Part shown: positions 50,701 to 53,700 of the stretch, piece after piece | Position numbering within the stretch: position 1 is the first letter of the stretch | How the letters are laid out: each line of letters begins with the position of its first letter | Assembly: GCA_904063045.1 (NCBI GenBank) | Contig: CAJFCJ010000009.1 | Span: 414,942-478,941 of the forward strand | Direction: 5' to 3' | Source: Dimorphilus gyrociliatus | Taxonomy: Eukaryota; Animalia; Annelida | DNA: 64,000 nucleotides | Made by a program: the position numbers and the translations under genes | The notes under the pieces: model-generated | What the model was told of the DNA's origin: nothing | The model's input: only the letters and a program-made list of their open reading frames with translations | Database searches by the model: none

Positions 50701-53700
50701 AGCATAAACTGCTCTGGCCAGACAAATTCTAGCTTTTTGTCCTCCACTAAGGGAAACACCTCTTTCTCCGACCAAAGTTTGATCACCTTTCTCCATTAAT
50801 TTTAAATCCATTTTCAATGCAGATACTTTTATTGCTCGATCGTATCGAATCTGATCGAAAGATTGTCCAAAAAGGATATTTTGACGAACACTTGAACTAA
50901 ATATCCATGGAACTTGAGGAACGTAAGCTATTTTTCCTTTTGATTTAACATCGCCGCTGACAATGTGCATTTGATCAACCAGTGACAAGAGTAGAGACGA
51001 TTTTCCAGATCCAACTGGTCCTATAATTGCAATTAAGTCTCCCGGTTTGGCTTCAAAGCTAATATCGGATATGATAGGCATTTCATTCTAAATAAATATA
51101 TATATATATACATAAGAAAAGTTTATTTTGGACTCGGTGTTCAATAATTTACATTATCCCAAGATGCAGAAATTTTGTTCACTCTAAGACTTGGCTTGTC
51201 AGATTCACAATCTGCAGACAATGGCGGTGATGGTGGCTCAAGTTCTTCCAATAATAAAAATTCCTGCGATAAAACATATCGTAAAGATATCGTAATGAGA
51301 CTGCATAAACGAATAGGGATAAAAAATTATTTTAATCATAAGGAAAATTGAAGTATGCAACATCAACGAATGTAGAGAGCTTTTGCTTTTGTCCTAACCT
51401 TCAGACGTTCACAGGACACTCGAATATCAGCAACACAGAAAACGCAATGAACAAAACGCCTAAAGACTGTTCCACGTAGAATGTGCATTAAACTAGCCAG
51501 GGGAAAAACAATTTCCGCACGAAAAGTATATCTATCCGTTAAAAATACGCTTATCACTACTAAATAGACGAGGAGTTTAGCACCAATCGCGCTTTGGCCT
51601 TCAGAAAAAGCTTTCCATGTTTTCGACGATCTGACGAATCCTATTTCGGATCTGGAATAAAATTCACATAATCGATATCAAGAGAAATGACTCGACAGCT
51701 ACTTTTACAAGTTATCTTTCGAAGCGATATGTTAAAAAGCAATTATATAAATTACCCTAAATCAAACCTGCAAACGTCTGATCGTAATGTTAAGTTCAGA
51801 AAAGCCTACACAAGCGGACGTAAAGAACCATCCAATGCTAACTTCTAAAAGTGATAGAAAAGTCTTTGTTGGAAACAAAAATTCACTTTGCATTAATTTC
51901 TTAGTCTCAACAATCGAGCAAAGGATAATTAAAGCTACCATAAATGATCCCATTTCATCAGAAATTCCTCCTTCTAAGCTATATATAATTCCCTGTATCT
52001 TTACGAATTTTAATTCTTCTCTGGAAGAGATGATAATGATGAAAAGTGAATAATTTAAAATTGTTTTAACGAAATTAGCTTTGTAAATAGTGAATAATTT
52101 GTTGTGATTTAAAAAGCAAAAGCTCATGAAAATATAAAATAAAATCAACTTTTCGCTGTTTGAATATGTGTTTAATGATACCTAAATTCTATTGATAGAA
52201 ATTCTTAATATTACAATAGGCGATTGGTTATTGGAATCCTCTAACGACAAAAAGAAGGATTTCAACCAAAATTTTGATCAAATCAGTAAAAAGTTCATTC
52301 CGCTTCGTGACTACCCTTTTCCAAGTTGATCTTAGAATCTTCCAGAATGTAATAAAACTAAAGTCAAAATAGTAGATATCGATACCCCTCCCGAGCTTCT
52401 TTGAATAGTATTTGAAACTTTTAATACAAAATTTCCACCCTCCAATTTATGAGTAGTTAAAAAAGAATCGTTCATTCAAAGAAGAAAAAATAAGGCGTTA
52501 GTGAAGTGGGGATTTGGAAGCAAAGCGGGCAATGAAAGAAAAAAAATTACTGTTTTGCATACTTCAACTCTCAGAATATTCTTTAAAGTTGTCTACCTGA
52601 ATTCTTCGCAAAGATAAAAGACTTTCACTTCCATAAGTAATTGCCAATGGAATGAACAGACAGAGTGTCAGTCTTAGCGCATCAAATATTCCAAGAGCCA
52701 TAAATATATTACTAGCTTTTAATTGAATGCCAGATAGGCTCATAGTTGAGACAGTAAAAAATAATACGAGTTTTACAGAGGCAAAAAATGGAGCAAGTAT
52801 AAGTGCTCGAAACGATCCACTTACACTAACTCGTTTAATTTCCAAGCTGAAGTAAATTCAATATTCTGGATCATCAAATTATGACTTAAATTGGCCTACA
52901 AAGACTTTTTCTTAATCCTTTTTTTTTCACCATACTAAAAACCTATTAAGTAACAAAACTACAGTACAATAATATTAAATTGTATGGTTATAAAGCCAGC
53001 GTAATAGATCGTATAGAAGCAAATTAATCAGTAATATCGGTAAGCTAATAGATCAATTATTATAATATTAATTAGATATATAATGTTTAATATGTATACT
53101 ATACATGCAACATAGATTTGTCTATTATTTTTCTTTTACTTTTATTGTATTTATTTGAAATATAGTAATTTGTACTTATATAGAATTATAATATCTAGAA
53201 TAAATGATAAAATTAACCGAGAATTTAGTTGTTTACCCTAAGAAATAAGAAATTACGATAATTTTCTAAAATCAAACCAATAGTTCGCTGTTAATAATTA
53301 TTAAAAGATAGTTTAAGAAAAATAATAAACTTTTTAACTTTTAGATATACATAGCATACGCTATGCATACAATATTTATCAATATACTATATTAGGAGAG
53401 AATCTCTTTATATTAGCTTTTTTTATTCTAATTACAATTCTTTAATTTACTAAGAGATTTAAGACTAACTAAAATAATAAAATTGCTTGCTATGCTCTAA
53501 TAAATAATCAATTAGGGTGAAAAATTATAGAATAACTTACTTTCGAACTTTCGTAACCAATTCAGCGAATAATTTCTCCCAACAATAAGTTTTTATAACT
53601 CGTATTCCCGTGATAATTTCGTTCATTAAACGAACTCGAGAATCAGTTTGGGTAGCAGTTTTTCTCCTATATTATATTTTCATGAAGAATATTAAAGAAT

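Follow-up and report, generated by a model that had tools for sequence, protein, structure and literature searches.

A transporter gene of the annelid Dimorphilus gyrociliatus carries three tandem alternative exons, and the question it raises is how one of them is chosen over the others. The gene is of the ABCC4 type and lies on the minus strand of a 64,000-nucleotide (nt) stretch of genomic DNA (GenBank assembly GCA_904063045.1, contig CAJFCJ010000009.1, positions 414,942 to 478,941; hereafter the window, by which positions are numbered). All exons and RNA elements described here are on that minus strand. The alternative exons, A, B and C, have canonical splice sites and lie between an upstream constitutive exon (U) and a downstream constitutive exon (D). 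Two pairs of complementary intron segments, S1 with S1' and S2 with S2', are nested around exons B and C, and a third helix (H3) lies inside them. On balance, we think it probable that these nested helices cooperate: they would loop out exons B and C, mask the donors of both, and bridge the exon A donor to exon D.

Exons A and C are used mutually exclusively

Exon U (53541-53665) has a donor that joins exon A or exon C, as judged from the sequence and from the RNA joints 53541>52846 and 53541>51651. Exon A (52597-52846; 250 nt) has borders drawn from sequence and RNA junctions, and its product matches solved ABCC4 structures. Exon B (51768-52020; 253 nt) is an open frame under purifying selection. 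Exon C (51399-51651; 253 nt) is bounded by U>C and C>D junctions. The acceptor of exon D (51153-51263) is at 51263 and is common to exon A (joined from 52597) and exon C (joined from 51399). None of the lengths 250, 253 and 253 nt is divisible by 3, so two of these exons together would shift the reading frame.

We found that exons A and C are both used, and that their use is mutually exclusive. RNA junctions came from run X1, whose transcriptome contigs were judged by their spliced joints; such contigs drop rare variants. Exon U was joined to exon A at a depth of 152, and exon A was joined directly to exon D, skipping B and C, at a depth of 231. The joint from U to C, skipping A and B, had a depth of 100, and the joint from C to D had a depth of 342. 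No A>C joint was present among the contig junctions of this run. Joints to exon B were also absent from the RNA contigs, which is weak evidence given that these drop rare variants.

One contig was unspliced from 51622 to 52625, a span that includes exon B and reaches 30 nt into exons A and C at its ends. Its depth was 109, and the depth of the unspliced A-to-C interval was about a quarter of the exon depth. Most of the intron between U and A (52982-53505) had a depth of 0, and the C-D intron was without any contig. The likeliest source of the unspliced contig is molecules from which the outer introns had been removed while A and C were both kept. Such molecules would be dead-end products if exon choice at one end of the cluster were independent of that at the other.

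We also observed an alternative acceptor for exon A. Position 52942 was joined to U at a depth of 156, compared with 152 for the normal acceptor. The joint adds 96 nt (52847-52942) and brings an in-frame stop after five codons, and the resulting isoform is probably unproductive.

Two nested intronic helices and their conservation

We found two perfect inverted repeats in the introns of the cluster, exactly where a preliminary description of this sequence had placed them. The core of S1 (52555-52567) occupies intron positions 30-42 past the A donor and is perfectly complementary over 13 nt to the core of S1' (51348-51360), which occupies positions 39-51 past the C donor and ends 84 nt before the D acceptor. 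The full arms, 52555-52572 and 51343-51360, form 18 base pairs (bp) including two G-U pairs, in agreement with the roughly 18 bp described before. S2 (52112-52125), which lies in the A-B intron and ends 91 nt before the B acceptor, is perfectly complementary over 14 nt to S2' (51377-51390), at intron positions 9-22 past the C donor. With exon borders based on sequence and RNA, we reproduced the nested order that had been proposed: the transcript reads S1, S2, B, C, S2', S1', so that the helices are nested around exons B and C. The pairing distances of these helices are 0.7 to 1.2 kb.

Inverted repeats of this length are unusual in sequence of this kind. The 1333 nt between the A donor and the D acceptor were subjected to 2000 dinucleotide shuffles, of which 4.8% contained a perfect inverted repeat of at least 13 nt and 1.6% one of at least 14 nt. 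Two of at least 13 nt occurred in 0.05%, which answers the concern, raised in the preliminary description, that similar repeats might be common in shuffled introns. Across the 64-kb window there were three perfect inverted repeats of at least 13 nt within 1.5 kb and with at least four G/C, two of which are S1:S1' and S2:S2'. The third, of 13 nt, pairs 8466-8478 with 9678-9690. The window contained no further copies of either arm, so the arms are not dispersed repeats, and positions 51000-53700 gave no match to any known RNA family in Rfam.

All four arms are kept in a relative. The comparison is with a single relative, represented by a 24-kb Logan contig (L001) that was found by a protein search with exon B (one match, 75% identical). 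The contig is syntenic with the window, with the same neighbouring genes, and exons A, B and C are all present in it with the same phases and with their splice sites kept. Ratios of nonsynonymous to synonymous divergence (dN/dS) were 0.13 for exon A, 0.19 for exon B and 0.06 for exon C, which indicates that all three are coding. Synonymous divergence (dS) was 0.88, 0.72 and 0.50, respectively, and the four-fold degenerate sites of exon A were 34% identical; neutral sequence is therefore near saturation between the two animals. Exons A and B were 75-81% identical, and exon C was 95% identical at the amino acid level. Four-fold site identity was 73% in exon B and 67% in exon C, which suggests constraint on the synonymous sites of these two exons, possibly acting on the RNA.

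Searches for further relatives gave little. A protein search with exon C gave none, and one with the exon for nucleotide-binding domain 1 (NBD1) returned only this relative above 61% identity. Two metagenome scans found no relative, their matches being at most 40% identical. Three samples of the relative were identical in the region and therefore uninformative on polymorphism.

Against this diverged background, the arms stand out as conserved blocks. The A-B intron is 576 nt long in the window and 599 nt in the relative, and the two introns cannot be aligned. Exact matches of more than 10 nt between them are limited to two 14-mers, S1 and S2; two shared 14-mers arose between shuffled A-B introns in 0.03% of the shuffles. 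The distance of S1 from the A donor is kept: in the window the 14-nt block starts at position 28 of the intron, and in the relative at position 29. The S2 14-mer is identical but shifted relative to exon B. In the 135-nt C-D intron, two blocks are kept at equal positions, one of 24 nt that comprises the donor and S2' and one of 14 nt that comprises S1'. The first ~51 nt of this intron are nearly identical in the two animals and the remainder is not. When partners for the initial 56 nt of the C-D intron were sought in the A-B intron, the best two in both species were S1 and S2 (-20 to -24 kcal/mol), and the next-best was at -16 kcal/mol or weaker. The conserved stretch between S2' and S1' had no convincing partner on a scan.

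Changes in the flanks of the helices preserve pairing at several positions. In the 5-bp outer extension of S1:S1', the relative has two-sided changes from A-U to U-A and from G-C to A-U, and a G.U pair has become A-U. Beyond the opposite end of the core, the relative has four additional pairs. Two T-to-G changes beside S2, which face unchanged bases beside S2', lengthen S2:S2' from 14 to 16 bp. These substitutions are suggestive of a pairing function, although two species are not proof. The presence of the helices in the sequence, their statistical unusualness and their conservation are established, and the flanks suggest partial covariation.

These data bear on two simpler explanations. The repeats might be chance matches or the relic of a mobile element, as AT-rich introns are rich in short inverted repeats (26 pairs were listed in 2.1 kb). 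However, the shuffle tests, the scan of the 64-kb window and the lack of further copies there all speak against this, as does conservation of the arms across a dS of ~0.7. The conservation would mean little if the relative were the same species, but this is contradicted by the 75-81% identities of exons A and B. We regard chance or a relic as very improbable. Alternatively, the four conserved blocks might be binding sites for splicing regulators, with complementarity that has no function of its own. Conserved intronic islands beside alternative exons often bind proteins, and both S2 and S2' are tandem hexamers, GCUUUU twice in S2 and AAAAGC twice in S2', like a repeated protein motif. However, perfect complementarity extends over 13 nt in one pair and 14 nt in a second, independent pair, the flanks of both pair despite substitutions, and by the shuffles it is very unlikely that both pairs are complementary by chance. 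Protein sites with incidental complementarity therefore seem to us improbable, though less so than chance repeats.

A third helix, the predicted fold and exon choice

We found a third helix that the preliminary description, borne out for its two pairs, had missed. H3 pairs 51767-51781 (H3a), which comprises the last 14 nt of exon B and the first base of the following intron and so covers the B donor, with 51401-51415 (H3b), inside exon C at a distance of 3 to 17 nt from the C donor. The helix has 15 bp with two G-U pairs (-26 kcal/mol), spans ~350 nt and is nested within S2:S2'. A helix as long as this one arose between shuffled exon B and exon C sequences in 0.8% of trials (P = 0.008). The relative also has 15 bp, with one G-U pair (-29.8 kcal/mol), a synonymous G-to-A change having turned a G.U into an A-U. 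The C donor sits in the 10-nt gap that separates H3b from S2', and the 3' arms of all three helices fall within ~70 nt around this donor.

Fold predictions gave all three helices when the interval was limited to the cluster. Between the A donor and the D acceptor, each of the three helices had a mean pair probability of 0.83-0.99, in the window and in the relative alike. S1:S1' and S2:S2' are present in the minimum-free-energy fold as well as in the centroid fold. The preliminary description held that these two pairings can form together, and the model agrees: the arms are separate and nested, and both pairings are present in the predicted minimum-free-energy fold. For the longer interval, from the U donor to exon D, H3 was predicted at 0.98-0.99 in both species, and S2:S2' at 0.87 in the relative and down to 0.34 in the window. 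Fold predictions for RNAs of 2 kb are unreliable in either direction. In the minimum-free-energy fold of the window the C donor pairs with six bases of exon B, a pairing that is not kept in the relative.

Cooperating helices would affect exon choice as follows. Once formed, they would fold exons B and C into a loop, with the B donor inside H3 and the C donor flanked closely by a helix on either side. The A donor, which precedes S1 by 29 nt, would be drawn near the D acceptor, 84 nt past S1', and the A-to-D splice would be favored. The preliminary description likewise had the A donor brought beside the downstream constitutive exon; the geometry matches the A>D junction that we observed, and the proximity itself is a model prediction. 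If the helices did not form before the 135-nt C-D intron was removed, the C donor would be spliced to D and exon C would be used. The helices would act cooperatively and not competitively. All four intronic arms are transcribed ahead of the D acceptor, which makes such a kinetic contest plausible. We infer that the helices form in vivo and that they act in this direction.

Several observations weigh against this interpretation. The C>D junction is the deepest of all, so the structure cannot form in most transcripts. In the fold from the U donor to D, S1:S1' has a much lower probability, 0.33 for the window and 0.00 for the relative, in which S1 goes into a local hairpin instead. A check for compensatory substitutions, proposed in the preliminary description, identified two such flank positions; however, one flank pair of S1:S1' is broken in the relative (A-U to A.C), and with identical cores and one relative the covariation rests on few flank positions. 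Finally, the arms of H3 are coding, and so their conservation is confounded with protein constraint.

Our results might also indicate a true docking/selector switch, in which S2' would be contested by S2 (looping out B and C, for exon A) and by a second selector (looping out C alone, for exon B), or S1 by S1' and the region of the A acceptor (the latter looping out A, for exon C), or both. The candidate second selector, S2b (51732-51742), lies in the B-C intron and repeats the S2 core exactly over 11 nt. It is 81 nt before exon C, comparable to the 89 nt between the copy in S2 and exon B, pairs over 8 bp with S2' (-8.2 kcal/mol), and keeps a 7-nt core in the relative. The A acceptor pairs with S1 over 11-12 bp in both species (-16.1 and -14.4 kcal/mol). 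However, the main helices exceed these competitors in strength by 8-16 kcal/mol and have no nucleotides in common, splice-site function accounts for the conservation of the A acceptor, and the RNA contigs contained no exon B junction. The pairing of the A acceptor with S1 was considered as a structure that loops out exon A and was rejected; it is kept in both species, yet its probability was 0.00 in both ensembles. We consider a docking/selector switch unlikely.

Other pairings were sought and noted in the same introns. When the U-A and B-C introns were scanned against all four arms, only weak, non-conserved partners appeared. The B-C intron of the relative contains an S1'-like element (L001:10341-10356; -17.9 kcal/mol with S1) that has no counterpart in the window. 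In the U-A intron, 52895-52909, within the alternative extension of exon A, is 93% complementary over 15 nt (12 nt perfect) to 51858-51872 in the interior of exon B; the relative has ~8 bp of a similar match, elsewhere. In the short intron before U, 53672-53686 pairs over 15 bp, with one G-U, with 52123-52137, a stretch that both abuts and overlaps the 5' end of S2. This flank beside S2 differs in the relative.

The complementary flanks might instead drive mainly the back-splicing of exons B and C into circular RNA, with A-to-D skipping as a linear by-product. Inverted complementary sequences around exons are a classical signal for circular RNA, and S2 and S2' closely bracket the B acceptor and the C donor. 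Four runs contained no backward joint, although such a joint would be concealed by assembly into contigs and by probable poly(A) selection. Linear mRNA makes abundant use of exon C, and masking of the B donor by H3 has no bearing on circles. We think circular RNA a poor candidate, somewhat less probable than the docking/selector switch and a little more so than protein sites.

Returning to the cooperating helices, a more specific model can be put forward tentatively. A three-tier concentric zipper that masks two donors and bridges the third to the common acceptor, and not docking competition, might set exon choice, and the abundant transcripts that retain the A-to-C interval might be dead ends produced when the choices at the two ends are not coordinated. 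We regard this as possible, though as doubtful in its full form.

An ABCC4-type gene among known pairing systems

Several comparisons identify the gene as ABCC4-type. Exon A aligns with residues 306-387 of human ABCC4, and 8 of 8 matches to solved structures were to ABCC4 (E = 2.8e-11). We take these residues to be transmembrane segments 5 and 6 (TM5-TM6). In a protein search, the named relatives of the NBD1 exon were mostly labelled ABCC4 or MRP4, and downstream in the locus of the relative the domains ABC_tran, ABC_membrane and ABC_tran follow in sequence. Exons A, B and C are identical to each other at merely 14-19 of ~84 residues, which indicates that the exon duplications are old. Constitutive introns here are 65-70 nt long and the G+C content is 33%; the median intron of D. 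gyrociliatus is 66 bp (PMC7854359). The best protein matches came from mixed phyla.

Spliced contigs of the gene (window 50153-51037 and 53626-54000) were also present in run X6, a metatranscriptome labelled coral metagenome, most of them 95-99% identical. Their presence there indicates that the animal or a close strain lives with corals.

The preliminary description likened the layout to the competing architecture of the Dscam1 and Drosophila MRP1 clusters. The pairings are real, nested and conserved, but the arms use separate, adjacent 3' segments and both would favor exon A. Some features of a docking/selector system are present: exons A and C are tandem, homologous and mutually exclusive, and the start of the C-D intron is a conserved docking-like element in an intron that flanks the cluster. 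One selector per exon, each sharing the docking nucleotides, is not what we found; S1' and S2' do not overlap and can coexist. Scans of the introns revealed no strong conserved selector for exon B or C, the weak S2b being the sole candidate. The cluster would work like the docking/selector family, but competition for shared docking nucleotides is the defining feature of that family in the strict sense.

The closest parallels are in insects. According to PMC6071210, which attributes the work to Yang et al. 2011 and Yue et al. 2017, downstream docking sites pair with elements after the variable exons of insect 14-3-3 zeta, Mhc and MRP1. As in these genes, the exons here are tandem, homologous and exclusive, with conserved elements in the intron before the downstream constitutive exon, and pairing with an element just past a variable exon would loop out the others and bring its donor near the common acceptor. 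Unlike in these genes, there are two, probably three, nested helices with separate 3' segments, all predicted to favor exon A, and there is no selector for each exon; the gene is also ABCC4-type and not MRP1/ABCC1-type. The same paper describes stem ensembles and bidirectional pairings for Drosophila srp, RIC-3 and hymenopteran MRP. There too, several intronic stems act jointly around alternative exons. However, the stems of the bidirectional model exclude each other and each loops a different exon, whereas those described here are concentric and enclose the same exons.

Two further comparisons are with genes outside this group. Mammalian ATE1 exons 7a and 7b (PMC7797038) are likewise an exclusive pair outside arthropods with conserved intronic elements and long-range pairing, but there R1 and R4 compete for R3, and such competition is not shown here. 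The second comparison concerns donor masking. The tau exon 10 and SMN2 TSL2 stems are local hairpins that mask donors. H3 resembles them in enclosing the exon B donor, and helices likewise flank the C donor; H3 differs in that it spans ~350 nt and links two alternative exons.

A search of the accessible literature found no description linking an ABCC4-type gene with such a cluster. The novelty claimed in the preliminary description nevertheless has to be qualified, as there is a precedent across phyla for pairing in this family: PMC6071210, PMC7434440 and PMC9741552 attribute to Yue et al. 2017 clusters of exclusive exons in MRP/ABCC genes with long-range RNA pairings. Independent exon duplications in the MRP genes of several phyla are attributed to the same study. 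What is particular here is the cooperative nested layout together with the donor-masking helix, within a known mode of exon choice.

Most of the good evidence that long-range pairing controls exclusive splicing comes from arthropods, with a few vertebrate genes besides. The cluster described here is a compact (~1.3 kb) and conserved example, with RNA junctions, in the transmembrane region of an ABCC4-type gene. Its small size and three separable helices suit minigene work on additivity, and on donor masking versus donor-acceptor bridging. The unspliced A-to-C interval would allow failures of coordination between the ends of the cluster to be read directly.
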